Assembly (NCBI GenBank): GCA_051294905.1
Contig: CM119384.1
Location: 24,242,001-24,306,000, forward strand
Origin: Botryllus schlosseri
Taxonomy: Eukaryota
Reading direction: 5' to 3'
Length of the DNA stretch: 64,000 nt
Shown: positions 3,711 through 45,779 of the stretch, piece after piece
Layout of the letters: each line of letters begins with the position of its first letter
Numbering within the stretch: position 1 is the first letter of the stretch
The notes under the pieces: generated by a model
The model's database searches: none
Told to the model about the DNA's origin: nothing
Seen by the model: only the letters and a program-made list of their open reading frames with translations
Program-made: the position numbers and the translations under genes

Positions 3711-3712
3711 TT

Positions 3713-4701
3713 CTATTTATTTTCTATTGAGGAATTTACATTCCTTTTCTTGCTGTTACTTCTTCTCCGTTCGGCGGAGCGTCTTTTTCTTTTGTTTTTG
3801 TTTTCCACTGGTGTGAAGCCATCATTTCGTTTAGGAGTCGTTACTTTTGTCTCACTATCCTCAGTGTCATCTACTTCTTCTGAGTCAGAAGTGCCTGAAG
3901 AGGAGCTCAGACCCTCCAACACCTCCTCAATCATCTCATTCGCTGCCTCACCCGTGTTTTGTTTTTTATCCTGCTCCTCTGATTCGACATCGGATGTTAG
4001 GTTCTTCTCTGTTTCACTGTTTACTGTATGTTTTTGTACATTTCCCAATGCAGGGAATTCTTTTTCAAGTTCTTCGCATTGAACTCTTGTGTGCCCTGTT
4101 TTATGGCATTTGTCGCATTGTGCAGTTTTGCAATTTGTGGCCAGATGGCCGTTTCTGTTGCACTTTGTGCAAATTTTCGGGGGCTGCGCCCTTTTTCTAC
4201 TGTTGGTGTGTATACTTTACAGCTAGCTCCATCAATGTTGATGAAGGCCGGTAGCTTTCCTGATTCATATTCTACCATTGCCACTGATCTGTATCCATTG
4301 TGGAGGTTTAGACCTTTGTGGTAGAGTTTTTTTATTCCCACTATAACTCCTGCCTTCCACTGATCCAGTGCTTTCGCAACTGATTCATTGGAAGCTTCAG
4401 ATGGCACTGCACGGATATTGATTACCGACGGCTGGTCTCTGGGTTTCATGAGCGTGTAGCTCTTTCCGTTGTGCTGAATTTTAGGATTTTCATTTAACAA
4501 CTCATTTCTTGCATCTTCGTCTACCATCGTTAGATTGAAGACGTCAGGTCCAATCTGGAAGGCTGCTTCCATTCTTTGTTTGTATGATTTAAGGTAATCT
4601 TTTTGATTGAAGATATCTAGTACCTCTTTCAAATTTATTTCATTGTTTCCTTTGATGTCAACCGATAGCGGTCTTTTGCCATGTAATTTTGGATATTCCA
4701 T
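3713..4701 (-). pseudogene. E1 ORF1 (gag-like, two CX2CX4HX4C knuckles) with one frameshift near 4175
   Basis: After a 1-nt shift at AAATTT the frame reads CTKCNRNGHLATNC KTAQ CDKCHKTGHTRVQC and continues into the 3713..4048 ORF. Confidence 0.88.
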
Positions 4702-4816
4702 TATTTGTTTATTGTTTATCCTGTTTCCAGGTTCTGTAATTCAAAATGAGCTGGGCTAACAGAGCCCGTTTCTTGCCTTCAAGACTTATTCTGAAAAGAA
4801 CTTTGCCTTTACTGAC

Positions 4817-4840
4817 CTCTTTAAAACCAAATACACCAAT
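4817..4840 (-). other. Spliced-leader-like 24-mer A (ATTGGTGTATTTGGTTTTAAAGAG), followed by GTCAGT
   Basis: 19/24 identity to the copy at 9764-9787, same length and register; 115 nt upstream of the E1 ORF1 ATG. Confidence 0.7.
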
Positions 4841-5880
4841 GTGTATTACGTAGGTTATCTATTTTAACTTCGTATTTCACGTTGCGTGTGAAAGACGTCC
4901 CGCTCGGAAAAAAAATTTTACGCGTGTAAAAAGTACGTCCTGTCTAAATTTTACAGTTTACAGCGTTCGCCACAGCGGCAAACCAAGGTTACTGCTATCG
5001 TAAATCTGAAAAACAAGCTAGAAGACACCTGCCACTACCAATATTTTTTTTTTTTTTCGGTGACCGCAGTCATCCCAATTTTATTCCAAAAGAATTGCAA
5101 TACAATAAAGAGACAAATTATATATATATTTAGCTATGTTCATTCACACTTCAGCATTCAGAAAATATCAGCCACGGTATATTCAGTCACGCGCACATAC
5201 ATACCAAACCATTCACACAATTGCAATTCTCCGGTCTATGTTTCTTTTTTCGTCATCCTCGTCATCATCCATCCAGCGTTTGTTGCAATCCATTCGTCCT
5301 CCATCATCCGCCGTCAAGGTTCGCCGTCATCGTCCGCTGTCGTCCTTCTCCCATCGTTGGTGTTTCGGTTTTGTCAGTTGAAGTGATTCTTGTTTGTTTT
5401 TCTTCCGTTAATATTCTTTTCTGTTCTCATTTTTGATTTCCTTCGTTATTTATTAATTTTCCGTATCTATTTTATCGTTTCCGTTCTGTTATTCTTCTTT
5501 CTTCTTCTAATTTCTGTTTTCTGTGGTAATTTCGCTACTAATTCAATGGTGCGTTATGGTTGACTGAGCCGGAGATTTCGTTTCGCTCGCCATTGTCCTT
5601 CAATGAATGGGTACAATCGGAGCGGCCGGATTGCATTGTTTCGCTATTCTGGAACAATCGGATTCTTTTATTTTTAACAATCGGTATTTCTAGGTCTAAT
5701 TTGCTTCTATTTTCTTCGTTTTTGCACTAAAATCTAATCTAATGGTACTATCTTGTTGTGCTAATCACTCTCTATCCTATGATACCACTTTTATTGCCGA
5801 ACCTCAACAAAAATTTTTCGAGTACCGGTAATCAATCGTGGTTTTCGCCTCTAATGTTTTGGTACAATCTTAGGTTAAGC

Positions 5881-8800
5881 TCATCCATATTCTTCAATTA
5901 AGAACACCAATTCGTTTTTAAAGAGTTGTTCTTCTGTTGTATTATCAAATATCGATATCCTTTTGAACAATTTCTTTATTATTTTGTTGACCACGTCTTT
6001 CACTGTCATATCAAAGTTCTTTACTTTTTGATTGACTTTGTCTAGTCCAAATTTCCTTTTGATTATTTCTTTCTTAATTATACTCATTATGGTCCAATCA
6101 TTCTTGTTTTTTAGTTTCTCATTGTAAAGAATATTTTCACTGTCTATTTCTTTTTGTTTTATTAACCTCTTGAAGGCACTGAACACATTTTTCGCCAGTT
6201 TGCACTTGACCATTATGTGTTCTATGTTGTCTTCATCTTGACCGCAGAAATTGCATTCTGTGATGGTCTTGTTCATTGAATTAATATTGAATATATTCAA
6301 TCTTTTTCTGTCTTCTCCAAGGAAGAATCCTTTTGCAGCCGTTCTGATGTTTACAACTCTCTCTGCATTTGTTATGGGGTTGCATTCCCCATTTGTAGTG
6401 GTGATTTTTCTCCACTTTATTTCTTGCCCAGAGGGTTTTGTTATTCTGGGTATGTGTTTGGCTTTAAGCTCTTTTATGCCGATGTACAGGTCTTTGTGGG
6501 CTGCTTCTACCCAGGTTTCCTTCTCCCATTTCATTTCTTCCGCTCCCTTTATTATATTCTTCCACTCGTCCGACACGATTATGCTGTGTGGGGTCGAGTT
6601 GGTATATAATTTTTCGTTGATTTTCTTCAGTTTTGATCCTAAGATATAGATTGCCTCGTGGTGCCAAAACTCTGTTGGCTCCTCGATGCTGGTCAGTATT
6701 TTATATTTCTCCAATTTACATGCTTCGATTTTGCTTTTTATACAGGTTATTTTGAGGTCCCCCATGATTTCGGTGGATTTCATGTGGGTTCTCTTTATTG
6801 GCTCGATCTTTTCTGGCGCCCATATAAAGTTGAAGAGGAGCCTCTCCAGTGTGTTCGCCACCTCTTTTGGCATTTTTATTACCCTGGCGTTGTGTACCAC
6901 CTTAGAGGCAGCCAGGCTATTTATTATGATTGCTTTCCCGTACCAGGTGAGATTTCTCATCTGGTAGGTTGTTAATACTTTCTTCACCTGCTCTATCCTT
7001 CTGTCCCATGTTTTTCGGATATAGTTCCTGCCAAATATTTGTCCGAGTATTTTTGATGATTCCACTATGTATTTTTTATATTCTTCAGATCTAATTAGGT
7101 TGGGTTTAGTACATATAATTTCGGTTTTTGATCTGTTTATGATTTGTCCCGTTGCTTTTGCGAATTGCTTCAAGTTTTTAAATATTTCTGTTGCCGAATC
7201 TTCATTTGTTACTATTGCGGTCAGGTCGTCCGCGTATTGTTGTAGTCTAATTTCGTTTTTTCCAATTTTTATACCTTTTATGTCTTTGTTGGCCATGATT
7301 TTTCTGGCCAGCGGGTCGGCTGTCATTGCGTATAAACACATGCTTAGGGGACAACCTTGACGGAGCCCCCTGCCTGTGTTTATGCCATTTGTCAGTGTGC
7401 CGTTTATCTGCACTTGGCTATATGAATTATCATATAGTCTTTTTATGCATTTTCTTATTCCTACTGGTATGCCATAGGAATGCAGAATTTTATGCAGGTA
7501 ATTATGGTTGACACGATCGAAAGCTTTTTCTTGGTCTATGGATATTACTATGAGATTTGTGTTTTTTCTGAATGCTTGGTCTAATGCTGCTTTTATGTTT
7601 CTTAGGGCGTCTGCAATTTGCCTATTTTTTACTCCACATTTCTGTGTATTTATGATCAGATTTCCCATTACTTCTTTTAGTCTATTGGATATAATTGCTG
7701 TTAAAATTTTGTAGTCTAGGTTTAATAATGTGATGGGTCGCCAATTTTAGGTTTTTCGAGTCTCCCTTTTTGTATATTAAAGTTACTATCCCCTTATTCC
7801 AGCTCTCGCACGTGTCTCCCATATACAGTGCATTGTTGTATAATTCTTCCAGGTGTTCCTTTATACTCTCCCAGTAGGTGGTATAAAATGATTTTGTCAG
7901 CCCATCACTTCCGGGCGTCTTGTCACTGCTCATTTTCTTTATCGTTTCCCTTATCTCATCTTGCGTTATGGGTCCTTCGAGTGAAGGCATGTCTTCCTCT
8001 TCGACCCTAACGTCTTTGATTTGTTCTAAGAAGAGCCTCTGCTCTTCTTCGTCTATATCGGGCTGGGCCCGCCATAGCTCTTCATAGAATTGTTCGACCC
8101 TCTGTTTTATTTGCTTTGGGTCTTTTAATTCCCTTTCGTTTTTATCCCTTACGCAGCTCATTCTTTGTAGGGATGTTTTCTTCTTCAGCATATCGAAAAA
8201 AAGTTTCGTTGGTTTCTCTCCAACTTCCCTATCTTTCATTTTCGTTTTTTCTATTGTAAATTCTAATTTCTTCCATTCGTACTTTTTCAGTTCCCCTTGC
8301 AGTTTTATTTTGGCCGTTTGATCTTGGTTGATCTCCGCTATTTCTAATTTCTGTCGTAATTCCTTGATTTTTCTTTTTTCTATGTTTTCTGCTGCTACCT
8401 CATACGCTTGTAAGGCTCTTTTTATTTTGCTTTTTACATCATCCCACCATTTCGACAGGTGTGTGTAGTTATGTTTGTTTCGCGACATAACTTCAATGAT
8501 CATTTCTATATTTTCTTTCGTTTGTTTGCTTGTTAGTACCTCTTTATTACATTTCCAAATTCCTTTGCCCCATCTGTTTTGTTTTTGATTTCCTATTTTT
8601 ATTTCCATTAAATAGATGTGGTCCGAGATTGGATTGATCTTATATGTACACTTGGTGATGTCTTTGTTCAGGATGTCAGTGGCATACGCATTATCGATGC
8701 GTCTTTCCTGATCTCCGGTCTTCTTGGTGTACAATTTCTTGTGGGGATGCCTGGAACGGTATATGTCTTGGTACCCATGAATGTCTGTAAAATTTTTCCA

Positions 8801-9341
8801 AATGTTTGCGGCCAGTGTTCTTTTGAAATTTAGGTTAATCTTAGCGTCCAATTTGTTCGTAATTAGGTTAAAGTCCCCTATCAATAGTGTACGATTTCCT
8901 GCTTTTTTTTGTGTTTTCCACTAGGTTTTTGTAAAAGTCCGTTGTATGTTTTGAAGTTCCTGGTGGCGCATATATATTCCATATTTCCAAATTTTCTTTG
9001 TTGTTTTTCTTCAATGTAATTCTCTGCACTCTGTTTTCTATTATAATATCGTTGGTTATGTCGTATTCTTGTTTTAAAGATGTTTTTACTATCACAAGGG
9101 TACCTTGACAGTAGTTCTTTTTACCTTGATCCACATCTCGCCAAGTGTCTTTTATGTCTAGGCAATTGGCATGCATCTCGAAGTTGTTACCGGTACACCA
9201 ATTTTCCAATTTCTCCTTATCTATTTTATGTACTTCTTGGAGGCAAAGCACGTCTATGTTGTATTTTTTTGCTAATTGAGTTATGTTTTTCCAATGTTTC
9301 CTGAACCCGTTTATGTTTAGTGATGTAATCTGGAGCTCCAT
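5881..9341 (-). pseudogene. E2 ORF2 (APE + RT), two frameshifts (~8875, ~7735)
   Basis: ORF pieces 8868-9341, 7682-8884 and 5881-7668 are collinear with E1 ORF2. Confidence 0.93.
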
Positions 9342-9343
9342 TT

Positions 9344-9763
9344 CTATTTCTTGTCTTTGGAATTGTTTACATTTCTTTTCTTACTGTTACTTCTCGCCCT
9401 CTCAGTAGAGAGTCTTTTCCTCTTCTTTTTATTTTTATTCTGCACTAAAGCAAAGTCTTCCTCTTGGTTGCTATCTTCTTTTCCCTGTGGATCACTGTCA
9501 TCAGTTTCTCTTGCCTCTTCCGACTCTGAGTCGCTTGAAGAGGAGGTTAGGTGTTCTGCCACCTCCTCGATCATTTCTTTTACCACATTGTTGTTGTTTT
9601 GTTCCTCTGATGCAATTTCAGAGGTCGGGTTTTTCTTTGATTCTTTGTTTATTGTTGGTTCTTGTGGGTTTCGCAATGCAGGAAACTCTTTTTCAAGCTC
9701 CTCGCATTGTTCTCTTGTGTGCCCTGTTTTTTCGCATTGGCTACAATATGCGAGTTTGCATAC
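9344..9763 (-). pseudogene. E2 ORF1 3' remnant, starting at the end of the first Zn knuckle
   Basis: VCKLAYCSQCEKTGHTREQCEELEKEFPAL aligns with E1 NCKTAQCDKCHKTGHTRVQCEELEKEFPAL. Confidence 0.9.
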
Positions 9764-9787
9764 CTTAATACAACCAAATACTCCAAT
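9764..9787 (-). other. Spliced leader exon sequence ATTGGAGTATTTGGTTGTATTAAG (copy B, exact), followed by GTATGC
   Basis: Matches the 24-nt stolidobranch ascidian SL as I recall it; recurs 23/24 at 24816-24839. Confidence 0.8.
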
Positions 9788-10335
9788 AGCTAGAATGGGC
9801 ACAGGGAGAGACTACTAGTACCTAGAGAATGATCAGCACTCGTGCCTGTCTGAAAACGACCACCCGTCGCGACCGGCGGTCGCTTCGTATTCGGTGCAAT
9901 ACCCGCTTTTCCGATTTTGCTTGCACGTCCCGGTCCGTATTGGGGCTCATCGACTTGCATCGGTTGCGGGCGGACAGGGTTATCGGCGGTTATTTTCTTC
10001 GATTTCTACTTATCGGGGTCGGATTCCATCCATCGCATTTTTGTTTTGTGATTTTTTGTGGGTGGGTAGGGCGTCGGTCAATTCTTCTGACTCTTCTCGT
10101 AAGTCGAGTCGGATCTTCCTATTCGAGGCAGACGCGATAGTTTGCAGTCTCGCGATCGAGAGGGGCCAGCCAGGTCTCGTGCAATATTGCCTAATTAGTA
10201 GTTACTGTAGCATGTAGCTCCCTGATTAGTCAGCGTCCGAAGAGCATCGCCGTTGTTGCATCGCCGTTGTTTTAACAACACGTCCTGGTCCGTTGAGTCT
10301 GGAGGCGACCTGACGATCGCGTAAGTGCGTACGTG

Positions 10336-10387
10336 TCAGTTTATCAGACGTCGCCGAAGATGCGTATTCGAGCGTTTGTTCGCGAGA
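10336..10387 (+). repeat. Dispersed ~50-bp motif M, copy 1
   Basis: tcagtttatcagacgtcgccgaagatgcgtattcgagcgtttgttcgcgaga; near-identical at 45780-45832, inverted at 18364-18403. Confidence 0.85.
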
Positions 10388-11312
10388 CGCGACAAAGACC
10401 GACTGATCGGCCATCGCCCGCCACGAGGTAGAGAGGCTATCGGAAACGGCGGGTCAGAAGTAGACGACAATGTGTATTGGGCTTCGAGTCGTGTCGGGTA
10501 TTGTTGAGATGCCGTACGAATAAGAACGGCGTGGCAAGTTGAAATATGTACAAGTTGTACAATGTACATGTACATGTAACGTGACCGCGACGAATGAAAT
10601 ATCAGTTCCGCATCGGATTGAATGTAATGTAATATTTTTGAGCGTACCCATTTAATCGCGCATGCATGCATTGACACTGTTGCCCTGCCGCGGCTTCACA
10701 GATATCTAATCGGCTTTGTATGCCGCAACGCGACCAATCGAGGTTCTAAAACTATAACATTGGGAAATTATATCGACACAGACGATTAGTTCATATGCAT
10801 AACATGTAGCATTCTCCGTATTGACCAGACACCGTCGGCCTCGCTGGTAATCAAAGCCGGCTGCACAGTGCACACTGGCTCTCCCGACACGGCAAAACGA
10901 CGGGAGAGAACGACAGACTCACGCCCGTCTGTGACTAAGCGATGTGTTTTGTAACATTTTCTGCTCTCTACCAATCTGTGGGTTGTAGCAAATACTCTGC
11001 ATTTTGCGCCGTTAATATCCACGTAAGAGTGTACCGTCTTGGTGTTCTTCTATTGCTACAGCACTGTAGCCGTTTTGTCACTACTCGAGTTTTTTGTAAT
11101 AAACCCTGATGATTCTGATCACTTTTGCGGAATTCCAGAAATGCATTGGGCACGACCTCGTCGCTCGCTTCAATCGGCACAGCCCTGATGTTTAGATATG
11201 TTAGCAGCGGCGGCGGCGTCCGCGATTTCTGTATTTTGTCTTTTTTCCACTATCCTAGCGTAAATGTGGCAACCGCCTGAATTAGCGCCGGCCGCGGACG
11301 ATGCTGCTAAAC

Positions 11313-11560
11313 CAGGAGTTCTCAACCTGGGGGGCGTGAAACATTTAAAGGGAGCGCGGAGAAGCGGTCGGTCGCCTGAAAAAAATTTTCGCGCCTAGCG
11401 CGATTTACCTCCAATGCACGCGTGTTTCTCTCTATATAGACCCAACTTCATATATTTTTATTCTCTCATCTGCATAACCGTCCATACCATCAATCAAACA
11501 ATCTGTTGGGGTTGCTAGTATATATGACGATAGGGGGCCGGCGACAATTTTCGCGTGATT
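11313..11560. mobile_element. Partial hAT-type MITE (left end only)
   Basis: CAGGAGTTCTCAACCTGGGG resembles the hAT TIR at 55150; no right TIR found; 3' limit approximate. Confidence 0.4.
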
Positions 11561-11867
11561 GATCGATCGCTCGCTCACTCACACGCGCCACGGGTGGTGC
11601 GCCGCCTCGCCTTGATTGCTCAGCGGGTGTCTGTCACCGTTATTGCTTGCAAACGACTTGCTGCGGATTGGTGAGCTGCAGCTGCGGCGAACGACATACA
11701 CAAAACACTACACGGCATCCTTAATTTGTCAATTAAAATTTGTGAGCGCTCTCGGCACGAAAGTAACATTTTTAAACTTTTTAAATTTCATACACGGAAA
11801 CGTAACTCACCCACAATTTTAACTCTAGTGATGATGATGTTTGATGTATACTCCGACACGTCGGAGC

Positions 11868-12020
11868 GTGCAGGCCAAACTTGGAGGTACTGCAATACCA
11901 AGATGACCCACGGCAGAGGCGCAGCAAGCCGCAAACACTCCACCAACGCTGCAAAAATCAAATTAATACACAGAGGGGGTCGATGACCCCCGTTACAGGT
12001 ATTAACCTATAAAGAACAGA
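11868..12020 (-). ncRNA. U2: U2 snRNA gene, 3' portion (from TCTGTTCTT to the 3' end)
   Basis: TCTGTTCTT; SL IIa ATAGGT-TAAT-ACCTGT; IIb GGGGTC-ATC-GACCCC; Sm site GATTTTTG; SL III with CTTG loop; SL IV CTTGG-TATTGCAGTACCT-CCAAG. Confidence 0.93.
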
Positions 12021-15000
12021 TTTTTTTGTTTGTAATATTTTATTTCAGCAACATTCATGAAAAGAAATATGCACGTTGAAATAAATATAGTCGCGACTTC
12101 GGTCACCTTATACATATGCAATACATATATATAGAACAATACCCGCCATTTACGGTGGCGGGGAAAAAGATTTTATTTTACAAAAAATAAATGGCGAAAA
12201 ATCACAAAATGAAAATGCGATATTATTATAAGGGCCAGAGAAGACATGGCCAGTTCGCCCGGGGACAAGGGACACTAACACAGACAAAGGCCTCCACCAA
12301 AAACACACAATATATGTGGTGGAGGCCGACAAACAGCATAAAAATAAAGGGGCGAACTGGCGAGGTCCGACTGCAGGCATTATCATAATATTTGTGGTGG
12401 TGGAAGTCGAAAAATAAAATTAGTCGTCATGAAGTGGGGGAACTCCTCCCCTTAGCATTTGGAACCGCACGGGAACTACAATCAAAACTAAACAACACAG
12501 GGGTCCACTTATGTTAATTTGGGGAGGAGTTCCGTGAATCAATCCAGTGTCCAGTTGCCTGCAGTCGAACCCCGTGATGGCTAGCGGGCTAAGCTAATAA
12601 CCAAAAACACAAAACACATAACAAATAAAAAGCACGTGAAGGGGGGGGGGATCAAGTCCTCTCGTGGTCCCGCACACTACACCAAGCCTTCCAGACACGA
12701 TGAGAGCCGCGCTGAGAAGCGACCACGGCTCGCTCGGAGACCAGTCTGGACCCGAAGACCGAAACACCCATCGCACGTAAGGTGGTCAGGTTCCCGGGGT
12801 GGTAACTCCCCAGGGACCCGACCGCGAACGTGTGCATCTCCACCACCTTGGCCGTGGCAACGCGGAGAGACTCACAGAGGTCCTTGTACTTTGCGTGTTT
12901 CAGTGCGACGGCAGCGTCCATACTGGCTACCCCATTCTCGAAGGGGCACACCACATCGATGACTAAGACCCGGCGACGATCCGCTAGGATGAGGTCGGGC
13001 CTCAGCCGCCTGTTGGCTAATGTGGCGTGCTCCTCGCAAACGCGGTCCACATCACATCTGAAAAAGGAAGAAGAGCTTGGAATACAATCCAGGAGCACCC
13101 CAAGTACCGAATTGTGCCTGTTCGTGATGCTATCCATCACTGGCAGGCAGTGGTTCAGTACGTGGGGCAGGGTCTCGGTATGCTGTCCGCACTTGCAGCA
13201 GACCTCACTTGGCTCCACACGTTTTCTAAACCGACCCCGGATCGACCGGAGCGGCAGAAGATTCAGTCGAGCTTTAAGCATCCAGCTACGCTCGACTGCC
13301 GTCAGGACGTTGGAAGACCGGAGGAAGCGATTGGAGCTCCCGTACCGGCTGTGGCACTCCACAGTTTTACCCTGGTCGGGAAGCTCCATCCACCGTGTCT
13401 TCCAACGCTGGTTCACCTTCAGGTGAAGGAATTTGGTTAAACGACCCAAATCCTGACAGCAGTCGGCGCCTAGAGCCAACTGGTAGAGCCCGTCTTCGGT
13501 CACGAACCAGCGAGCACCGAGACGCCTAGCAACGGGTCGGACCTCGGTCCAAAGCCCGTAGGCGTCTCCGTACGCCCTGGAATCGTGCCCTGTTAAACTC
13601 GACTGTCAGGGTCTCCGACGCCTCTGGGACTCGGCAAGTCCTCCGGACGACCAGCGCCAACCTTCCACGCGCAACCGCCCGCACAGAGGGGTCAGTGGAA
13701 TTGACCATTTTGGCGGCCTGGGAAAGCCTCAACACATCTGCTTCGCAGCAGAGGTTGGGAATCCCCAGACCGCCAGTCGTCAGCCCAGCATGGAAAAAGG
13801 GCTGACACGCTCTGTTAGGGAGGCGGAATTCCGCCTTCACCAACGTGCGGATACGCGCATCCAGGCGACGCAGATCGCTTCGGTAGAACTTGCGGATTCT
13901 CAACTGAAAAAGGATTCTTGGAATAACAAACCTCTTCAGTGCGAGCAGCTTCTGAAATGAGGTGAGATGTGACAGAAAAAGTCTGTCACAATAGGCCTCG
14001 AAAGTTTTAAGGGCCTTCTCACCTTTCTCGGTTGCCTGGTAACCCATGTTCTTGCCCAGGTATCGCCAGAAAGAGTCACGATCGAGGACCCGGACCTCGC
14101 CACCATCAAGGCAGAACGGGGCCGAGTCCACGATCGATCGGCTTCCCTTGAACCCCAAGGCAAGAACACGACACTTGGTGGGCTTGAACTTCATACCAGA
14201 CCACCGAGAAAATTCATCGCACAGATCTAATTGTGCTTGAAGCTGGACGCGAGACGAAGCACACAGACAGGTGTCATCTGCGTAACCCTGAACTCTGACA
14301 GTGACGCCATCCGCTGCAGAAAACCGATAACCGCTGCTTTGAAGCCCAGCAACGCCACGCAGGAGAACCTCCATGACCAGGTTGAAGGTGATGGCCGATA
14401 AAGGGCATCCTTGACGGACACCCTTCCCCGCTGGAATGGGGTCTGTCGGACCAGAGCTGGTCGCGACTGCAAACACGTTAGACGCGTAGATATCGGTCAT
14501 CACCTCCACCAGGTACTCCGGGGCGTTAAAGTGCTTCAGGACCTCAATCACGGATCCATGCCGAACGGTACCGAACGCATTGCGGATGTCAAGCCAGGCA
14601 AGATAAATATCCTGCCTTGACGACTTGGCATCCGCAAGCAAGGACTCAAGCATGAACACGTGCTCGAAGACCCCCTCTCGCGGAACAAACCCCTTTTGTT
14701 CCATGGAGATAACATCTCCATCGGATGCCCAGCTCTGAAGACGACGAGCGATTACGGACGCGTAGATCTTGTACAGCGTCCTGGATAGCGCGATGGGTCT
14801 CCAGTTGCCGACGTCTTGCATGTCGCCGTCGCGGTCCTTTGGAATCAGGATTACCCGCGACGAGCGCCATACAAGTGGAATACGTCGACAACGCCTACAG
14901 ACTTCGAAAAGCTCAGAGAGGATTTCTCCCTTGGGGTCTAAGCGTTTCCAAAATCCATAGGTGAGACCATCGGAGCCTGGCGAACTACTGGTGTTTAGAG

Positions 15001-18000
15001 TCGCCAGAACTCCTGCTACCTCTGATGGAGTAATCGAATCGTCGTCAACAGCAGAAGCCAGGTTGCCCTGGTAACTGTGCTGAGTCATCCAGCGAGGAAA
15101 AGCAGCAATATTATCAGTGACGTCAGCGGCGGCGTCAGCACGAAATTTCCGCTCGATTACGTCGGCAGGAATTTCGCACCGTTTACTGCCAGAATCATCC
15201 TCGATGATCCGTCTGACCGTTTCCTTCTGATTGCGCCAGAAAGCGGACCGAAGATGTTGGGCTACCCCAGGTCGACACTCGCGCTGGCCATTCAATTGAT
15301 TGACCTTCGCACGGCGTTGTGCTTCGCGCGAGTATCGGTTCCTAGGGCGTTTACGGCCGGGAGGGCGGCTGCAATCAGAGGCACGGACAGTCCAGAGCTC
15401 CAGCTCACGTTCAAGGTGCCCGAAAGCCTCGGTGTTATGAGGACATTCTGACACCAAGTCCGCAAGCTCCGAGCGCAACTCGCGCAGATCGACTTGTGCA
15501 CGAGGTGCGCTCGGTTCGGGGGAAGGCACGTCGACTTCTATTTGGTCGCGTGCATTTACCGAAGGAGACAATCTCGTCGGGCTTTCACAGCCGCCGACAG
15601 CTCCGGTAACTTCGGAGCGTTCGACCGCTGTTCCAGCCGTCACAGAACGTGTCTCGTCCGCAAGTGGGCGCGAGGGAGACACGCTCTGACCGACGGGAGG
15701 CGAGTCTACGATGTTCGGACTCGATCCCGCCGACGATATCTGTTTCAGATCATCGCGTGTGGTGGGGAAGGGACTTCCCCGGTCCAACCTGGCAAGGAGC
15801 TCTTGAGTAGAGCTCGGGCTGCCAGGCAAAGGTGCTTTAAACAATTCCGAAAGCGATGGAATGGGGCTTGGTGAAGAGACAGGGGTCAAACGGCTCTTCA
15901 CTAACGATTGGGGTGGGGAGGGAGTAAACTCCCTTGGGGGGGAAACCACAATTTTTGGGGGTGTGGTACGTCGGCCTAGGGACTGTCTGCTATCCCCGGC
16001 AGTCCGAAGCCAGGCACGGGCGGCAGGTAAGGCCCCAGTGACTGGCCTACGGACCGGGAATCGGCTAATAAGAATTGGGGAAGGGGTTCGGGGCGCAGAG
16101 GAATTTGATGACGTCACGACTGTTGGCGAGTCGCGCGGCCCAAAGGATGTATTAGAAGACGTGGAGCTATCACTACGAGAAGAGGGATAGAATCTCATGG
16201 ACTTTATTTTATTTTTTGATTTTTTACAAGAATCGACAGAGCGTCGAGATTTATTCGAAATCCGTGACCAGGGCCTAGATGACACGGTTACCAAGGAGGT
16301 GGTATCCGACGAGAACGAAAGATTGGCCACGGATAAGGAGGGATCCGGTATAGTACCGGGAAAGGAAGTACAAGAGCTTTCCGCTGCGTCAACGGCAAAG
16401 GGGACTAAAGAACGCGAAGAAATAGGGGAGATCGCGTCGACTCGCGAAACAGTCGTGGACGTGGCTGGGGATGAGTTACCGGATGCGGACACAGCTCCCC
16501 GTAGGCGGCAGGCGGACCAATGGTTCTTGGCAGCGATCATATCAGGCTGCGCAAGAATTGTCCATTGGTCACATCTGCCGCACACGACATCATAATTTAT
16601 CAAGTTTTTTGTGATGTCGTGCTTGCTACAAATGTGCTTCTGAAGTGAAGCCAACAATTTGTACGGGGAGCCCTGCTTATCGCAACCGGTAACTGGGCAA
16701 GGATACAAAGTATCCTTGCCGTTATATTTAACAGGTACAGTCAATAATATTTCCAAGGGGATACCAGTTTGCTTAAAAGCCGAGTCCAAGGGGATAGCAA
16801 ACTCGGGGTGACAGGACTTAAAATGCTCCTTCGCTTTCGAAACCAGGTTAAAGCACTTTCCACAAGGCGGACAGGCATACCAACTATGTTGTCGCATGCC
16901 CTTGCACCGCTTATAGTGACAGGTCATATTGTGATCCGAATCCGAAAAAAAAAACGACATTTCATGCACTGCATATGAAACCTGTCACGGCGGTGCGAAA
17001 AAGCCAAATGATCCGTTAATTCAACAGATACCGAGAACGACAAACCACAATTTCGTTTTGGACATGCGACAACATCGCTCGTTCCTGGACCGTGGTACGG
17101 AACAACGAGAGGGCTTGAGTTTCCACTAGCCATCGAAGAAAATGCGGAGTCTAGGCCTAAAGGTGACCGAGTCGCGACCTATTACAACGAATATAAATAT
17201 AACTAGGATCAAATCTCGCACACAATTAAACGTAACGAAATGAGAATTGGAACAATAACTGGAAGCAAAGACTAAGCGGCCTGCACCAGCGTTCGCTATT
17301 AGATGGGATAGGAAAGGCGACAAAATGAACGAATAGTAACAGACAATTAAAGGGACAATACAAAGGTTAACCAAGGGGTCGAAAAGGAATAGCGAACGCG
17401 TTAGGATACAGGCCAGACGTAATTGTGTACCCACGCCGGACTTAATTACCCCCGCGTCAGCAGCGCTACTGCTACGCCCTACACGTATGTTAACGCGAAC
17501 GGTAAAATACGAATTTACCTTACGAATGCGCGTTAACACCCGGGTTTTCCTCGCCTTTGCAGATCGACGGCTCTCTGTTGATACTGATGTTATGTCCAAA
17601 CGATTCGCCGTCGATCTTCGGCCGTCCTTTTGAAGCGGTATTGATGTTATTCCGCTCCTGATCTTCTTTAGGACGGCGTGGCAGTTCTTCTCGCTGCTTT
17701 GTGCTTGATTTGCAGCGAGGCGGCGAGGAATCCCGACGTGTAGGGCCTCGACCAGAGTTGCACACGGCAACCTTTCTGCTATAGTCGAACAGTTAAGGCA
17801 AGCGATCCAAGATCACTCCGGTGGTTGAACGACGCGTTCAAATCACACCGTACCGTGGCAAAAGCAACGGAATTGATAGGCTTCTTCGTTGCTTATTCCT
17901 TGTTGCAGCGTAGACGGCTACGCCTTAGTTGAGCAACAAGGAATCTCTGGCCGGCGTTGGAATTGTAGCTCCGGAATAACTAACCTTTCCGGAGAGTCCA

Positions 18001-18149
18001 ACGTTTGTAGCAGAAGATGGTGGTGAATGACCGGCGGCAGAGGCGCGGCAAGCGGCTGCTGAGACGGAGGCGGTCGAGAAATCTTCTTCTGGAGTTCATT
18101 GGTCCGGCGTGGGCAGCGTCTTCGGTTGTCGAACGTAGGAGTCGGCGAG
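12021..18149 (-). mobile_element. Utopia/NeSL-type RLE non-LTR retrotransposon, full length, inserted in U2
   Basis: A7 tail abuts U2 TCTGTTCTT; 5' end abuts the U2 5' fragment; ZF-RT-CCHC-RLE ORF. Confidence 0.93.
12652..17133 (-). pseudogene. Utopia ORF: N-terminal Zn fingers, RT, CCHC knuckle, restriction-like endonuclease; frameshifts at ~16950 and ~13595
   Basis: SSPGSDGL, NWRPIAL, WLDIRNAFG, GVRQGCPLS, YADD; CCKCGQHTETLPHVLNHC, RHN, RPDL, IDVVCPFE, KY, VGSLGS. Confidence 0.93.
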
Positions 18150-18182
18150 ACTTGATCTTAGCCATAAAGGCCGAGAAGCAAT
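18150..18182 (-). ncRNA. U2: U2 snRNA 5' end (33 nt)
   Basis: ATTGCTTCTCGGCCTTTATGGCTAAGATCAAGT; the following GTAGTA is absent. Confidence 0.93.
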
Positions 18183-18343
18183 GGGGAGGAAGGGCCCTTG
18201 ACACTGATATTGAGTGATTTGACAATAATTTTTCACCCGATTTCGTTAATCGGAAATTTTTCGCGATCGAAAATTATCGACGACCTGGTCACCGTAAATA
18301 CTATTTTATTCAAATCCAAATTTTTTTTACCGCAATAACTTAA

Positions 18344-18363
18344 GGTTAGGGTTAGGGTTAGGG
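18344..18363 (+). repeat. Interstitial telomeric-type repeat GG(TTAGGG)3
   Basis: ggttagggttagggttaggg read directly. Confidence 0.85.
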
Positions 18364-18403
18364 TCTCGCGAACAAACGCGTCGAATACACACCTTCGGGG
18401 ACG
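18364..18403 (-). repeat. Motif M, copy 2 (inverted), ~180 bp upstream of the U2 start
   Basis: Reverse complement cgtccccgaaggtgtgtattcgacgcgtttgttcgcgaga. Confidence 0.8.
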
Positions 18404-18979
18404 GCAGTCACGCTGTCAAGAAAAGCCTGTAACACGTCTCTCCTGATCGTAGTGTGGCGTAAATCAATCACGCCGCTGGCTGTTGCCGACACGACGGAAT
18501 TGCCAACGAGGGTAAACAGCTAGAATTTATTTGTATCGGCATTTCAGAGCAATAAATGAGGGCGGAAGGCCAGCCCAGCCGTAAGAGAAAAAAAATAGGA
18601 AAATGTGTCGTAGCGCCGGGAATCGACCCTGACGTTAACCCGTATCGTAAACCCGTATCGTAGTGTATTTCACATGACAGTTGAAAAAAAACCGAGCGCA
18701 CTCGGCCGATGCTTATTTTTTTTTTTTTTATACGGCTCTCCGTAATCGCTGCCTTTCAGCGGCCCTCTCTTAGTTTAGGGTCGCCTCCGGGTCAGGATCT
18801 TGATTACACATTTTTGTTATTTTTTGGGTTTTTTTTTTTGGGTTTTCTAAATAAGGTGTTTGAAATGTTTTCGAACATAAATAAAACGGTTTCTTCTTTA
18901 TAGTTTACTCTATTTTTACTTCAGTGGTTACGGTGCATTGCTCTGCTTGCTAGTCATTGGGGGGTAGGTTTGCTTGTAC

Positions 18980-19003
18980 CTTAGTACAACCAAACCCTCC
19001 AAT
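18980..19003 (-). other. SL-like 24-mer C (ATTGGAGGGTTTGGTTGTACTAAG) in the E3 3' UTR, followed by GTACAA
   Basis: 21/24 identity to copy B; forms the 5' arm of a 48-nt hairpin (18956-19003). Confidence 0.75.
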
Positions 19004-19235
19004 GTTTGATATTGGTGTTATCAATATTCTTGTTTTATTTTCGTTTACCGGTCAGAAGCTTTCTGCCGGTCGCGAGTGGTTCAGAGGTTTTGTAGGCCCC
19101 TCCCCTCTCGCTCGAGGGCTTTTTTCCACTTTTTTTTTCCTTTTAGTTTTGGTTGGGGTTATCATTCTTTCGTTTGAGCCCCTATTTTAGGGGGTGTTAT
19201 GCCCTCTTCGTATTTGTTGTCTTGTTCACGTATTT

Positions 19236-22200
19236 TTAGGTTAAGCTGTCTATTTTGCCGAGTACCGTGCCTGTGTGTGAGTCAGCCTCGATTCGTCTGA
19301 CTCGTCTTTGAATTTTGGTGATTATCTTTTTTGTTATATTTTCGTCTGCGACTTTTCTGTTTTCTATGTCTAATGCTATTTTAAAGTTTATGATTGATTT
19401 TTTATATATAGACAGAATCGTCCAGTCTGTTTTCCTGTTTCCAATGTTATATAGGATGTTGTCGGCATTCAGCTTCCTCCCCACGATGTTTTCTAGCTGG
19501 GTTAAGATTTTTCTCGTATAATTGCATGATGTGAGAATATGTATCACATCATCATCATATCCGTTGCAGAATTTGCATCTTAGATCTAAGGTTACTCCTG
19601 TGTTGGAGTGTGTTATATTTCGGCTTCTTTTTTTATTTCCGAAGATATACGCGTTGTGTGCTGTTTTATAGTTGATGATCGATTCCTCATTTGTAATGGT
19701 TTTGTGGGTACCATATTTGGTTTGATTTATTTTATTCCAATTGATTTTATCCCCCCTTCCGGTTCTGCTTTCTGGATGGTTTTCCTTTAGGCTTTTGATT
19801 GCCTTGTATAAGGATTTATGAGTGGCGTCTTGGCACTCTTCTTCATCGAGATCTATTTTTTTCCAGATGTCGATGCTATCAGTCCAGTTTTTTGGGGTTG
19901 GGTATCTATGTGGTTCACTATTTTTGTATAGTGTGTCATTGATTCCTTTTATTTTCGTTCCAATTTCGTATATTGCGTGTTGGTGCCATAATTCCGTTGG
20001 TTCGTCAAGTTTTTTTCAGTTTTAGAATTTTTTCAATTTCACATGCTTTATTCCGCGATTCTACGTCAGGTATGTCGTAGCCTCCTTTATCTTTCTCTGC
20101 TATGAGCGTCTTTCTTCGAATAGATTCCATTTTTTGTGGATTCCATAAGAAGTTGAAGTATAGTTTTTCGACTCGTTTTTGCTGATCTTTTTGCATGGGG
20201 ATTACTCTGGCGTTATAGATGATTTGGCTTGAGGCGATCGAATTTAGAATAGTTTTTTTCCCTATCCAGGACAGTTTTCTGTGTTTGTAGGCTTGGAGTA
20301 CTCTCTTTATTTTCATAATTCTCATGTCCCATGTTTCGTTAGTTTGGTTTATTCCATAGTGTTGTCCGAGTATTTTAATGCTCGGTTTTGTAAGTTCTTG
20401 ATATCTGGTTTTTTGGGTTGGGATACTCCGTTTCGGTTTAATGTGCAAAATTTCTGTTTTTTGTGCATTGAGTTTTTGGCCCGTTGCACGTTCGCATCTT
20501 TCAAATTCCTGGAATATAAGGTCGATGTCCTTTTCACGCGTTAGGTAACAGGTCAGGTCATCCGCGTATTGCTGGATTTTCATTTTAAAGCCTCCTATTC
20601 TAAAAGCCTCGGTGTTCGGGTTTTTTTCTATAAGCCTAGCCAGGGGGTCGCTGCAGATGGCGTATAGGCTCATGCTGAGCGGACATCACTGTCGTATGCC
20701 CCTTCCCAGTTTAATTTTATTGGTCAGTGCTCCATTAACTGAGATCCTGCTGCTCGCTTCGCTGTAGATCTTTTTTATTAATTTAGTGAAGTGGGAGGGC
20801 AGGTCATATCCTGCTAAGGTCTTGTGCAGGTATTGGTGGTTGATTTTGTCAAACGCTTTCTCCTGGTCGAGGTTGACGACCAGGAGTTCCTTGTCTCTCT
20901 CTCGCGCGTATTTTATTGCAGCATGGGTATTTCTCAGCACGTCTGTTATGTCTCTTCCTTTTATGCCGCATTTCTGCGTTCCGTTAATGATGTTCGGAAG
21001 TATTGAGGTTAGTCTTGCTGATAGGATTGCAGTTAATATATTATAATCGGTATTCAGTAAGGTAATAGGCCTCCAGTTTTTTAATTCCTGGGGGCTACCT
21101 TTTTTATATACCATGGTGGTAACTCCGTCCGACCATGTTTGACATATGCCTCCAAAGAGGTATGCGTTGTTTAATACCTCCTGGAGGTCACTTTTTATCA
21201 GGTTGTAATAGGCAGCGTAAAATTCCTTGGCTAGACCATCTGGTCCGGGTGTCTTACCGTTGTCCATTTTCTGTATTATGATTTTGATTTCGTCTTCCGT
21301 TATAGGGGTTTTAAGATCTTCCCGCTGGTCGGGGGTGATCTTGATGTCTTTAACCGTGTCAAGGTATCTATTTTGTAAATCTGGGTTTGCGTTTTTTGAT
21401 TCGCTCCACAGATCTGTGTAGAATTTTTCCACCGTGTGTAGAATCTCTTCTTTGGTGGTGATTTCTGCACCGTGTTCGTTTACTTCTTTGGTGGTGATTT
21501 CTGCACCGTGTTCGTTTACTATAGAGCTGAAGATTTTGCTTTCTCTTCGCTGCTGTAGTTTTTGAAAAAAGTACCTTGTAGGTTTTTCATTTTCCTCAAT
21601 GTCTTTTATTTTGTGAAGTTGGCATTGATGCCGTATCTCTTCATCTTCGAGCCTTTTCAGTTCTTTTAGGGCGTCGATTGGGTTCTCGTCCGGGTTTTGT
21701 TCATTTTGTATGCGACTTACTTTTTCTTGAAGCGCTTTTATTTTGTTTTCGTTTGCAGCTTTCTTTTGCCAGCTATGGCTCTTAAGCTGTTTTTTCATTT
21801 CTTTTTTGAGGTGGTCCCACCATTGGTACACGTCGTTGAAGAAGCATTTCTGCTCGGTGCACTTTTGGTGGGTTTCCTCGATTTTGTTGTACAGCTCCTC
21901 ATCCTGGAGGTGTCTGGTGTCGTTTTTCCAGATGCCTTGTCCCCATTTGATGTTATTTGGTATTATGATTTGGATTTGCTGCATGAATATATGATCGGAG
22001 ATGGTGTTTAGTTTATATGTCGTACTCTTTACTCTTGCGAGGAGACGTTCCGATAGGTATATTCGATCAATTCGCCTTGATTGTAGTGCCTTCATTATGG
22101 TATATAGTTTTTTAGTTGGGTTTCGCCAACGCCATACGTCTCTTATTTTGTAGGCTTCTACAAAGTTTTTCCATATTTTGGCGGCAGGCGTCAGTTTAAA

Positions 22201-22722
22201 ATTCACGGTGTTTTTTGAATCTATCTTTTCTGTGACGATATTAAAATCTCCACAGATGATCGCACTCTCCGGGTTGTTTTTTTCTATGTGACTTATCAGG
22301 TCTTGGTAGAATTCAGTTTGGTATCTTCCAACATCGCTGGGCCCATATACATTGTATAGGGTGGCGATGTCGTTTGTGTCCTTTTCAGTTAAGCGTAGCG
22401 TCTGTGCCCTATCCCGTCGCAGTATCGAGTGGTCAATGTTGTACTTTGTTTCCAATTCCTTTTTGACGAACATTGCCGTACCTCTGTAGTAGTGTTTTTT
22501 ATTTTCTTCCTGATCAATCCAGTTTTGGCCTATGTTTATGTGATTTGAAAAGTATAATACGTCGTTTTGTTGTGCCCATGTTTCAATTTTCCTTATGTCC
22601 ATTCTGTGTGTCTCTTGGACGCATATTATGTTCCAGTTCTTTTCCTTTCTGAATAAGTTTTTCATTTTGTGCCAATGTGTTTGCATTCCATTGGCGTTCA
22701 GAGATATAGCATTGATCGCCAT
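19236..22722 (-). pseudogene. E3 ORF2 (APE + RT + Zn knuckle), frameshifted in the 3' half
   Basis: SLNANG, CVQET, GDFN, KTPGPDG, NWRPITLLN, LDQEKAFD, GIRQ, QQYADD; ORF pieces 20686-22725, 20005-20673, 19236-19547. Confidence 0.93.
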
Positions 22723-22752
22723 CAAGATTGGATAGGATAGGACACAGGGTTA

Positions 22753-24063
22753 TTATTTTTTGGCTTTTCTTCTTTGGCCTTTTGGTTTGTCGGTAGGACT
22801 TTGCTCATCCCTGTTTCTTTTGTTCGGTGAGCGGGCACTAAAGAATTCTGACGCTGTGAATGTGCGGTTTTCGAATTTTTTCCTTAATATCGAGGTCGAT
22901 CCGCTTGCCGGCGGATTGGTGTTGTCTATCTGGGATCTCGCCTCGTCTTCGCTTGTGACTAGGACTAAGTCCCCGTCGTTTGTACTTTCACTGCTAGTTT
23001 CGTTTTCCGTTTCTTGTACTATTGTCGTGTCTAATTCGGTCTTTTCAGGTGTATCGCCAAGTTCGGCGATTTCCCTAAATAGATCTATCACGTCATTTTC
23101 TTCTTGTTTTTCTTCGTCTATTTGTTGTTCGTTGGTGTTTTGTTCTGCGCTTTCCGCTTGTTTCAATGTTTCTTGGTTGTTGGCGCTTATTCGTACGAAT
23201 TGTGTCAGGGGGATGGCGTCTCTCTCCCCTGCTTGAGTCTGTTGTGTTTGTGGTAGCACATCAGATCTCTCTTTTCTCAATATAGCCTCTGGCTCATATT
23301 GCAGGAGTCTTCTTGCATTTGAGTTATTATTTGTGTTGTTTTCTGTGGTGTCTTTTGGTATTGTCTGCTGTTTTGGGTCCTCGTTCATGTTTTTTGGGCA
23401 ATTAATTTTTTTATGTCCGTATTCCTTGCATATCAAGCATGCCGTTTGGTTCGGGCAGTCTTTGGAGCCGTGCCCAGGATGGAGACACCTATAGCACATT
23501 TGATTTGTTGTGTCTTCTTCCGGGAGGTATGTTTTACAAGGGGCCTTGCCCAGATAGACAAAAGGCGGGATTCTGCCCGGTGTATAGTTCTCGATCGAAA
23601 TCTGTCTGTATCCGTTGAGTATATTTGTACCGCGGTGGTATATCAGGGTGATTTCCCTGATAGTACCACATTGGTAGCTTGTGAATTTTTTCCTGATTTC
23701 AGCTTCTTCGACTTCAGTCGGGACTGCTCTGATATTTACCTTGACTGTAGGAAGTCTAGGTTGCTCAATGTGTATTTTCCCTTTATCTGTGGTAATTCCG
23801 TTGTGTATTGCGTCTAAGAAGATCGTTTTCAATCTTTCCACCGGTGCTTCGGTTGGAAAGGTAAGATTGTAGGTATTCCTGCCTATTTGGAATAGGGAAA
23901 GGATATTATCTTTGTGTTCCACCAGTTTTGGATGCGTTCTTACTGCCTCGATGACCTCTGTAGCTGTGATATCTGTTGGGGTGAGTAAGTCCAAGGATCT
24001 TGGCCTGAGGCCGTAGGTGACCCTTGTGTTGTTCCTGCCTTGCAATGCATGCGAGTATGCCAT
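22753..24063 (-). CDS. E3 ORF1 (436 aa, two CCHC knuckles), intact
   Basis: CYRCLHPGHGSKDC and CLICKEYGHKKINC; homologous to E1 and E4 ORF1. Confidence 0.93.
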   Translation of the reverse strand: MAYSHALQGRNNTRVTYGLRPRSLDLLTPTDITATEVIEAVRTHPKLVEHKDNILSLFQIGRNTYNLTFPTEAPVERLKTIFLDAIHNGITTDKGKIHIEQPRLPTVKVNIRAVPTEVEEAEIRKKFTSYQCGTIREITLIYHRGTNILNGYRQISIENYTPGRIPPFVYLGKAPCKTYLPEEDTTNQMCYRCLHPGHGSKDCPNQTACLICKEYGHKKINCPKNMNEDPKQQTIPKDTTENNTNNNSNARRLLQYEPEAILRKERSDVLPQTQQTQAGERDAIPLTQFVRISANNQETLKQAESAEQNTNEQQIDEEKQEENDVIDLFREIAELGDTPEKTELDTTIVQETENETSSESTNDGDLVLVTSEDEARSQIDNTNPPASGSTSILRKKFENRTFTASEFFSARSPNKRNRDEQSPTDKPKGQRRKAKK

Positions 24064-24419
24064 GGCTATTGTAAGAAGGTGTTGGTTTCTGTTAGAGCTA
24101 GACAGCTGCTGGCGTCTAGTTCCTGTATCTTGTTTCCAGATGTGTGTGTTTGCGGCGTAAGTTCGTGCTATGCTGTGTAGCTGTGGCTTTACTGCTCTGC
24201 ACTATGAATGCCGCTATCGGTTTGTTGTTCTCTGTAGTCTATATACTGCTACGCTGCTGTGAAGCGCGTTGTTTAGCGATGCTTTTAGAAGCTTTCTGAC
24301 GCGTTTTTAAAGGCGTTTCTACGCGCTTGTTACACCGATACTACAGTTTCGCTTGCTGTACGAGCACCGTCTAGACGGTGTCGTAGCGCTTAAGTAATTT
24401 AGTTAGGAGAGCCAGACAG

Positions 24420-24650
24420 TCTCTCGACGTCTCGAACGAGACGCGCGTGAGAGGAGAAGGTAGTAGGCAGAGAGACTTGACTCAAGAGAGAGTCAAGTCT
24501 CTAAAGAAAAGACTCGACGAGTCCTGACTCGAGAGAGAGAGTCAAGACTCGAAGAGGTAGAGAAAAGACTCACCAAGACTCGACTCACTAAGACGAGTCA
24601 AGTCCCGGGGAGGTAGAGGTTTTTGAGTGAAAAGGTGACTCGAAGTGGAA
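24420..24650. repeat. Cluster of GACTC/GAGTC palindromic hairpins in the E3 5' UTR
   Basis: For example the perfect 13-bp stem agagacttgactc-aagaga-gagtcaagtctct at ~24471-24502. Confidence 0.75.
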
Positions 24651-24815
24651 TTTCGACGACGAAAAGAAGGAGAGGAAGTAAGTACGATAAGCCTATGTAA
24701 GTCAGAAAAAATAACTAGTTATTACGGTTAGGGTAAGTCTAGACTACTGCCACAGCGGCACCGGATCTCCTTGTTGCACCTGAAATAGCCGTTAGTTCAT
24801 ACTTACGCGTGATAC

Positions 24816-24839
24816 CTTAATACAACCAAATACTCCAAC
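24816..24839 (-). other. SL 24-mer D (GTTGGAGTATTTGGTTGTATTAAG), followed by GTATCACGC-GTAAGTAT
   Basis: 23/24 identity to copy B; only the first nucleotide differs. Confidence 0.8.
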
Positions 24840-24859
24840 TGGTTGGAATCGAACCAACT

Positions 24860-26065
24860 GGCCTTTATAACGCGTATAGATAGAACTGTAGACAGCACAA
24901 CGAAGCTGCAAACTGTACTGCAAAAGCATTACAATACGCGCACGGATAGTAGCTATACGCAGCGCATCTCTTCAGCAAAAAGCAACGCTACAAACTGTGT
25001 TGAAATAGCAATACATAGGTAGCAACCAACGACCGCAGTCTCGTCTAGACAAGCTGAAACAATCAGACAGGAAGGTAATTACCGATACTGGAGTATCGCT
25101 TCTCGGAGACAGACACAGCGCGTTACTGCGACGCACAAACAACAGTCGCAGATCAAAAGCAACACACCACGCCGGCTCTTACTGCCGACGTGGTGTTCTA
25201 GACTACAAAGGCCACCCACTCAACGTATACAGAGAAGCCGGCGATACACACCGGCTTCTCAGGCTACAAAAAGCCTAGGCCTAGCAAGATGGCATACGCA
25301 AACGTGCTAAGAAGCAACGCCGAAGCAAGAGTTACTTATGGCCTTCGGCCAAGATCAATTGACGTTCTTACGCCAAATGAACTGAAAGCAAGCAAACTAA
25401 TCGATGCTATTCAACAAAACCCGAACCTATCACAGCATATGGATGATATATTTTCAATCTTTTAGATAGGTAGGAATACATTCAATCTGACTTTCGAGGC
25501 AGATTCCCCTATCGAAAGACTCAGGGAAACATTCATCCACGAAACGAAAGAAGACGGAATAAACACAAAGGGAAAAATATACTTCACAGAAACACGAAAA
25601 CCAACAATAAAGATTAACATTAGGGCTGTGCCAAGTGAGGTGGACGAGGCCGAAGTTCGCCAAAAATTTCAAAATTACGAATGCGGTAACATAAAAGAAA
25701 TAGACATCATTTTCCATCGGGGAACAAAAATACACAATGGATATCGGCAAATATCCATAGAAAATTATATACCAGGCAAAATACCAGCATTCGTGTACCT
25801 TGGGCGCGCACCCTGCAAGGTATACTTACCGCCAGAGGAGCTTACAAACCAGAAATGTAATCGATGTCTCCTCACAGGACACAACGCAAAACAATGCCCA
25901 AACGAAACAGCATGTCTGCTTTGCAACGAATACGGGCACAGGAAAGACCAATGCACGAAAAACACAAACATAGAAAATGCGAGACGGGACTTCCCACCTC
26001 TACCCGGGAATGCAAACACACAAAAAAACACGAACCAAGAACAACTCCTGGCAGAAAGCCAACCG
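24860..26065 (+). mobile_element. Tx1 element E4, 5' part (5' UTR + ORF1 from ATG 25289, nonsense codon ~25463); head-to-head with E3
   Basis: MAYANVLRSNAEARVTYGLRPRSIDVLTP vs E3 MAYSHALQGRNNTRVTYGLRPRSLDLLTP; CNRCLLTGHNAKQC, CLLCNEYGHRKDQC; 5' limit approximate. Confidence 0.9.
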
Positions 26066-45660: not shown

Positions 45661-45779
45661 TATGTATCTTTTTTTTCTCTGGTGCTGAGTGCGCTCGGCT
45701 TTTATCCTACAAATGAATGATATGCGTGCTCCGCTGCGTTTGCTGCGATGTGGGTGAACGGCGGGGGCAATTCCGGGTC

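Follow-up and report, generated by a model that had tools for sequence, protein, structure and literature searches.

Retrotransposons devoid of long terminal repeats (non-LTR) that insert specifically into spliced leader (SL) genes occur in trypanosomatids (SLACS, CZAR, CRE) and nematodes (NeSL-1), where their orientation is sense and their transcription can begin at the start of the SL gene. Among the targets of long interspersed nuclear elements (LINEs), SL exons are listed only for elements with a restriction-like endonuclease, while LINEs of the Tx1 clade are directed to U2, 5S and tRNA genes or to microsatellites (PMC4640811; for the Tx1L nuclease, see PMC8869645). Another route from leader to genome has been described in dinoflagellates, where reverse transcription carries RNAs with an SL into the genome, and the AG of that SL can once more act as an acceptor (PMC3229502). 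Here, we analysed a stretch of 64,000 nucleotides (nt) of Botryllus schlosseri DNA, referred to as the window (assembly GCA_051294905.1, contig CM119384.1; C14:24242001-24306000 of a 495-Mb genome), in which several LINEs are associated with copies of an SL. We consider it probable that the window contains two SL units colonised by LINEs of the L1/Tx1 group, equipped with an apurinic endonuclease (APE) and a reverse transcriptase (RT), that integrate site-specifically at ...TTAAGG^TA..., i.e. between the leader plus one G and the TA behind it. Junction anatomy and genome-wide counts are presented below; that the endonuclease may read the SL exon is what we infer from them, since the downstream side of the cut varies and the upstream side does not. 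The features on which the argument draws, including untranslated regions (UTRs) and open reading frames (ORFs), are the following:

1-5043, minus strand: E1, LINE of the family group of E2; ORF1 (4021-4701) and ORF2 (231-3710), both uninterrupted
4817-4840, minus strand: degenerate SL copy (19/24) plus GT, within the 5'UTR of E1
5044-9763, minus strand: E2, 5'-truncated LINE with APE and RT; of ORF1 only the last ~36 amino acids, ORF2 in pieces (Pfam RVT_1)
9764-9787, minus strand: exact SL copy (24/24), GT at 9763-9762; target-side half of the SL unit that now holds a nest of E2, E1, a short interspersed nuclear element (SINE) and E0
18684-18715, minus strand: rest of a split SL unit (TAAGCATCGG, GC hairpin, T8 run), adjoining the poly(A) of E4
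18716-24815, minus strand: E4, full-length LINE; 5'UTR starting (GT)ATCACGCG, ORF1 at 22753-24063, ORF2 broken (19240-22725)
18980-19003, minus strand: SL-like copy (21/24) plus GT, within the 3'UTR of E4
24816-24839, minus strand: SL copy (23/24, first base G) plus GT; 5' half of the SL unit entered by E4

The leader itself is the 24-mer ATTGGAGTATTTGGTTGTATTAAG, whose copies were scored by identity and by the dinucleotide that follows. The original prediction, made from the sequence alone, had reported four copies at 19-24/24 identity, and these were recovered at the positions listed, all on the minus strand, which also encodes each of the region's long LINE ORFs (APE and RT) and is thus the sense strand, and with GT behind 4/4 of them. 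By chance, 0.005 matches per window are expected at up to five mismatches and 3e-5 at up to three. Across the genome, 561 copies with at most two mismatches compare with 0 for a reversed control, and 18/30 exact SLs have GT behind them (p = 9e-15). The 24-mer is identical to the 'Chordata 1' SL consensus (PMC3795323). Its proposed role as the leader of this species was borne out in four RNA-seq runs from two studies, which we aligned to window positions 4001-10000: each run contained 337-4644 reads composed of the template-switch oligo, the 24-mer and heterogeneous sequence, so the 24-mer is the 5'-terminal leader of many mRNAs. Most aligned reads would fit the arrangement SL-GTAAGCA-TCGGC. 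Start or stop pile-ups of RNA reads were absent from positions 4001-10000, and expression of E2 was almost nil. Besides, 3-23 reads from one study, in both orientations, joined the SL to GGTCACCG, with which an E1/E2-type LINE ends, plus poly(A), with joints involving window positions 5040-5065 and 9764/9787; such reads may stem from SL units with extremely truncated insertions or may be library chimeras.

At the first SL unit, the elements lie head to tail. E2 ends in an A14 tract at 5044-5057, immediately past which E1 begins with TATTGG. The A10 tail of E1 lies ~580 nt outside the window start (locus L044) and is followed by TAAGCATCGG, the head of a ~410-420-nt SINE-like unit, whose A20 tail adjoins TATCACGCG, with which an E4-family element (E0) begins, lacking only the SL and the G. 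The nest thus reads flank-SL-GT-[E2]-A14, TATTGG[E1]-A10, TAAGCATCGG[SINE]-A20, TATCACGCG[E0]. E2 is truncated and nevertheless joined directly to SL-GT, as seen from a tblastn map and from sister copies (L032-L036), which run on upstream into ORF1 at the very point where E2 meets the leader. Moreover, the flank of E2 (-151 to -1) together with the SL recurs at two other loci with different downstream partners: it precedes E2 in the window, an E4-like element in L042, and other sequence past SL nt 9 in L038. The earlier statement that upstream flanks are unrelated hence holds within the window, not beyond it. Part of this flank (9926-10069, minus strand) also shares 79% identity with a stretch of tandem repeats of ~4.1 kb that are present on many chromosomes, e.g. 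at C1:36.98-37.00 Mb and on C84.

The second SL unit has been split by E4. The poly(A) of E4 (A14, 18716-18729) is met at 18715 by the TAAGCATCGG intron start, the GC hairpin and the T8 run, and together with SL-G on the other side these flanks restore one SL unit; at 29-38 places in the genome the same TAAGCATCGG head directly follows SL-G. An SL intron had been said to be invisible here, which this junction contradicts. Among E4-family 5' ends, nine copies start at the SL, six start exactly at the T of GT or within a few nt downstream of it, and none in between. Between the split unit and the next LINE (E3, see below) lie three telomere-type CCCTAA units (18350-18370, minus strand).

The two remaining SL copies lie inside UTRs. 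All four had been placed at 5' junctions or in UTRs of elements; only two of them (at E2 and E4) mark the 5' junction of a LINE. The 21/24 copy sits ~265 nt ahead of the E4 poly(A), i.e. in the 3'UTR of E4 and not at the 5' end of E3, and the module to which it belongs is found in sister copies on C13 (L046), C3 and C1; in L047 it comprises 2.5 tandem units of 99 nt. The degenerate 19/24 copy sits ~200 nt inside the E1 5'UTR and occupies the same place in the C205 copies (L035/L036). We also searched for the TATTGGTAGTGG of E1 directly after an SL and found no genomic copy; a sister copy has TAGCATC at this place, and the leader of E1 is therefore a diverged SL-intron-like start.

Taken together, at least seven independent junctions place the poly(A) of a newer element directly against the first post-leader bases of an older one. 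Those in and next to the window are:

E2 to E1: poly(A), then (G)TA
E1 to SINE and SINE to E0: poly(A), then (G)TA (L044)
E4 to TAAGCATCGG: poly(A), then (G)TA

Those outside the window are:

L047: A7, then GTAGCAACGCG
L048: poly(A), then (G)TA
L065/L066: poly(A), then TGAGCATCG
C205: poly(A), then (G)TA

Genome-wide, A8 followed directly by TAAGCATCG occurs 27 times as compared to 0 in the control. Upstream of 67 heads defined by TAAGCATCG..CCAATCAC, we counted TTAAGG (SL-G) in 38 (36 plus 2 mutated), an A-run in 22 and something else in at most seven. As in a target-specific LINE, both junctions fall at one position (at least seven junctions read, 22-27 counted). An overly strict pattern, A8 plus an E4-family 5' end, returned the window-adjacent junction only. 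SL-GTAAGCATCG itself has 29 genome copies at no more than two mismatches, and the 29-38 copies look like dispersed retrocopies. Copies of the SL-led elements form nested clusters on C14, C13, C7, C3 and C205. An SL intron past a poly(A), which the original prediction had named as evidence for gene targeting rather than retrocopying, was thus encountered at E4, L044, L048 and 27 junctions genome-wide, and it is the alternative of that prediction, insertion at the SL RNA donor site, that matches the junction anatomy.

Identical poly(A)/(G)TA junctions would, however, also arise if SL-GT-led element RNAs gave away their SL in trans-splicing and the remainder, starting with (G)UA, retrotransposed, preferably into the poly(A) of an older element, so that the downstream member of each pair is the younger one. 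L1-type nucleases do favour A/T tracts, and this order would suit the uninterrupted ORFs of downstream E1 and the decay of upstream E2. Yet, a poly(A) precedes 0/11 SL-bearing LINE or SINE copies, which rely on the same enzyme, versus 22/29 SL-less heads (Fisher p = 1.4e-5), which argues against SL-less RNAs landing in older poly(A) tails. Neither the truncated E2 junction nor the flank shared together with its SL would be explained, and in the ~370 nt that were read, the 3' half of the SL unit split by E4 carries no separate poly(A). We therefore regard this order of events as quite improbable.

How the leader came to be on the element RNA is a related question. At L046, an E4-like element beginning TTGGAG..AAG-GT sits inside a 300-nt tandem unit whose neighbour is empty, and the first SL base varies (A, G or T) among SL-GTAAGCATCG retrocopies, into which the G of the 24816-24839 copy fits. 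From this filled/empty pair and the variable first base it follows that SL-GT stands at the start of the element RNA; the element RNA begins with SL-GT and is copied with it, as shown by one such pair. Transcription from SL base 1 is the simplest source of this leader, with re-trans-splicing at AG/GT also possible. As to the locus itself (C13:23791444-23794886), its ~300-nt tandem unit carries a 15-nt short leader variant (ATTGGTTGAATTAAG) plus GT, past which lie a GC hairpin and a T-run. The unit is reminiscent of the tandem SL RNA gene repeat of Ciona and forms part of an 8.26-kb higher-order repeat that also includes the E4-like LINE.

These data bear on the model favoured originally, namely that element RNAs are SL trans-spliced and reverse-transcribed together with the leader at near-random sites, whereupon the AG of the genomic SL is re-used as an acceptor. 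The 24-mer is a genuine leader in RNA, the element RNA does carry it (L046 and the variable first base), the SL is kept at 23-24/24 while neighbouring 5'UTRs are only ~75% alike, strong polypyrimidine-CAG acceptors lie just downstream in the 5'UTRs of E4 and E1, and the same recycling logic operates in dinoflagellates (PMC3229502). On the other hand, trans-splicing would leave unexplained why poly(A) adjoins (G)TA, why an SL intron starts past the E4 poly(A), why a truncated E2 still has SL-GT, and why one flank plus SL is combined with different partners. Likewise, RNA reads over the internal SL of E1 (depth 5-12x) carry the family variant (4824 A>C), and none had the canonical SL in its place. 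Of this model, we would thus retain the SL-GT on the element RNA, while the two junction copies can be explained without trans-splicing, which as a general account appears unlikely.

A leader on truncated E2 could, in principle, have been added by template switching, with the LINE enzyme, on completing reverse transcription, jumping to unspliced SL RNA, which is abundant, comparable to U6-L1 chimeras. The E2 junction shares a 5-nt microhomology (ATGCA) with the GTATGCA/GTAAGCA intron start. However, such a jump should have added the whole 3' part of the SL RNA rather than SL plus GT alone, and offers no route to poly(A)/TA junctions or to a shared upstream flank. We deem this explanation very improbable.

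Insertion between SL-G and TA would proceed as follows. A new poly(A)-tailed element, either a LINE or the ~420-nt SL-headed SINE, would enter between SL-G and TA and take over the SL on its 5' side, pushing the older element, which would now start with (G)TA, behind its own poly(A); repeated entry would build the head-to-tail nests. Transcription starting at the first base of an occupied SL unit would be the likeliest source of SL-GT on the element RNA. At new sites, this leader would merge with the SL of the target, and it would show as cargo only at rare off-target sites. The two UTR-internal copies would then be fossils, one of a composite 5'UTR (E1) and one of a transduced SL-headed tail (E4). 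One might go further and propose that leader-plus-GT RNAs are transcribed and capped like SL RNA, either donating their leader to host mRNAs or splicing, in cis or again in trans, to CAG acceptors of their own 5'UTRs to pass as host messages, and that the dispersed SL 'genes' were largely made and spread by retroelements; this extension is speculative, and we rate it as rather doubtful.

Several observations weigh against insertion at SL-G/TA. E2, which lies upstream and should accordingly be the younger element, is more decayed than E1. No target-site duplication beyond 0-1 nt was discernible. No SL RNA gene was identified that is free of insertions, demonstrably functional and equipped with a promoter, and 'gene' targeting therefore means targeting of the SL sequence. 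The insertion in L046 lies 12 nt past a short variant SL instead of 1 nt, so specificity is not absolute. Finally, the genome-wide statements are counts and coordinates, with the flanks of the up to seven 'other' heads and most of the 27 A8 junctions unread.

Further elements of the window are less directly tied to the leader:

11865-12020, minus strand: residues ~30-192 of U2 small nuclear RNA (snRNA) (Rfam U2, 99.7 bits), adjoining the A-rich tail of E3
12021-17770, minus strand: E3, GC-rich LINE of another family, not SL-associated; 5' end between 17770 and ~18340
24840-25996 and 40125-45660, plus strand: E5, E4-like LINE, head-to-head with E4, interrupted by ~14 kb of other sequence
45653-45700, plus strand: 3' junction of E5; poly(A) (A8), then TATGTATC.., T8 and a GAGTGCGCTCGG hairpin, which is that of the split SL unit

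The 3' end of E5 is a possible further insertion into an SL unit. At its 5' end, no SL was found on the strand of E5, and the 5'UTRs of E5 and E4 showed no similarity. The E3 family is dispersed (at least 35 copies sharing one 3' end point) and not U2-specific. At 11865-12068 (minus strand), the first ~30 nt of U2 are replaced by the A-rich tail of E3, a junction shared by three segmental duplicates on C14; no copy of the U2 5' half was present in the window or the sampled loci, and the junction is therefore a one-sided relic of the three duplicates. Intact U2 repeats reside on C1 at 7.7-kb spacing. A tRNA scan of the window found none.

Outside the window, most sampled exact SL copies head large retroelements that are not LINEs (L055, L061 and L063 on C1; also L003-L020). 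These encode gag (CCHC), a pol with RT, RNase H and a Tpt1/KptA-like RNA 2'-phosphotransferase, an IS1595-like DDE ORF and a further ORF. Upstream, a conserved module of ~190 nt with CCAAT/octamer-like elements has its end at the SL in every case, and its assortment is independent of the family downstream. Between +45 and +130 past the SL, L001-L025 contain an Sm-like AGCUUUGG/AAUUCUGG motif and a hairpin, CTGGACC-loop-GGTCAYTG, common to the big elements and to LINE family B (L008/L058); SINE heads have a looser, gapped version of this hairpin, and a CTTCAATCA-type box is found in big elements and SINE heads, not in LINE B. The CTGGACC..GGTC stem of SL-led leaders is invariant. The region may be an SL-RNA-like leader. 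In L021, L022 and L030 (C1, C2), an exact SL lies in 1.8-1.9-kb tandem repeats with long ORFs on both strands and is followed by TG, not GT.

As for the identity of the LINEs, ORF2 of E1 combines Exo_endo_phos and RVT_1 (Pfam) with an invariant C1039/H1048/C1053, and homologues carry zf-RVT. An N-terminal APE, an RT, a C-terminal Cys-His motif, a separate ORF1 and a poly(A) are all present, as is typical of APE-type LINEs of the L1 group. The structural model of E1 ORF2 (mean predicted local distance difference test score 78.5) matched Xenopus Tx1 (P14381) over the full length and mouse L1 ORF2 equally well (E ~ 2e-56), with 19% identity to each and template-modelling scores of 0.57 (Tx1) and 0.53 (L1), while R1, jockey, R2 and SLACS were far weaker matches (SLACS, E = 5e-14). 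The predicted structure thus places E1 in the L1/Tx1 group; since Tx1 and L1 ORF2 match equally, the original assignment to the Tx1 clade as such is unproven.

To our knowledge, SL-specific retroelements had been described in trypanosomatids and nematodes alone, all of them with restriction-like endonucleases. In the literature that we searched, which left many subscription papers and the Repbase reports outside its scope, we found neither an SL-specific member of the Tx1 clade nor a LINE targeting the SL of an ascidian; the LINEs seen here would be the first such case for the APE-type enzyme class and for a chordate. If true, an APE-type lineage of the L1/Tx1 group homing to a chordate SL exon/intron boundary would have invented the same niche independently. 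It would also explain why, in the Botryllus genome, SL copies are dispersed in their hundreds and LINEs are nested. Besides, it would provide a defined ~25-bp DNA target on which the acquisition of sequence specificity by an APE nuclease could be studied, and one may ask whether the SL RNA gene family is itself shaped by retroelements.

Compared with SLACS, CZAR, CRE and NeSL-1, the Botryllus LINEs share SL-specific integration and the sense orientation. They differ in their nuclease, which is APE-type and N-terminal instead of restriction-like, in the insertion 1 nt past the exon, i.e. at the exon/intron boundary, with the whole leader left upstream rather than cut internally, and in their chordate host. 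Tx1L-type elements resemble them in being APE-type LINEs whose integration is strictly sequence-specific and directed to multicopy small-RNA genes or to other repeats. The degenerate UTR-internal copies recall the relict SLs of dinoflagellates; there, however, the cargo is host mRNA, the sites are scattered and the relict SLs are truncated, whereas in Botryllus an intact GT donor follows the SL and insertion appears targeted. Lastly, as in LINE-SINE partnerships, an element of ~420 nt with poly(A), whose head is SL plus GTAAGCATCG.., shares the insertion site of the LINEs, with a tail unlike those of E1/E2 and E4, and while known SINE heads derive from tRNA, 7SL, 5S or snRNA, the head of this one comes from a spliced leader RNA.

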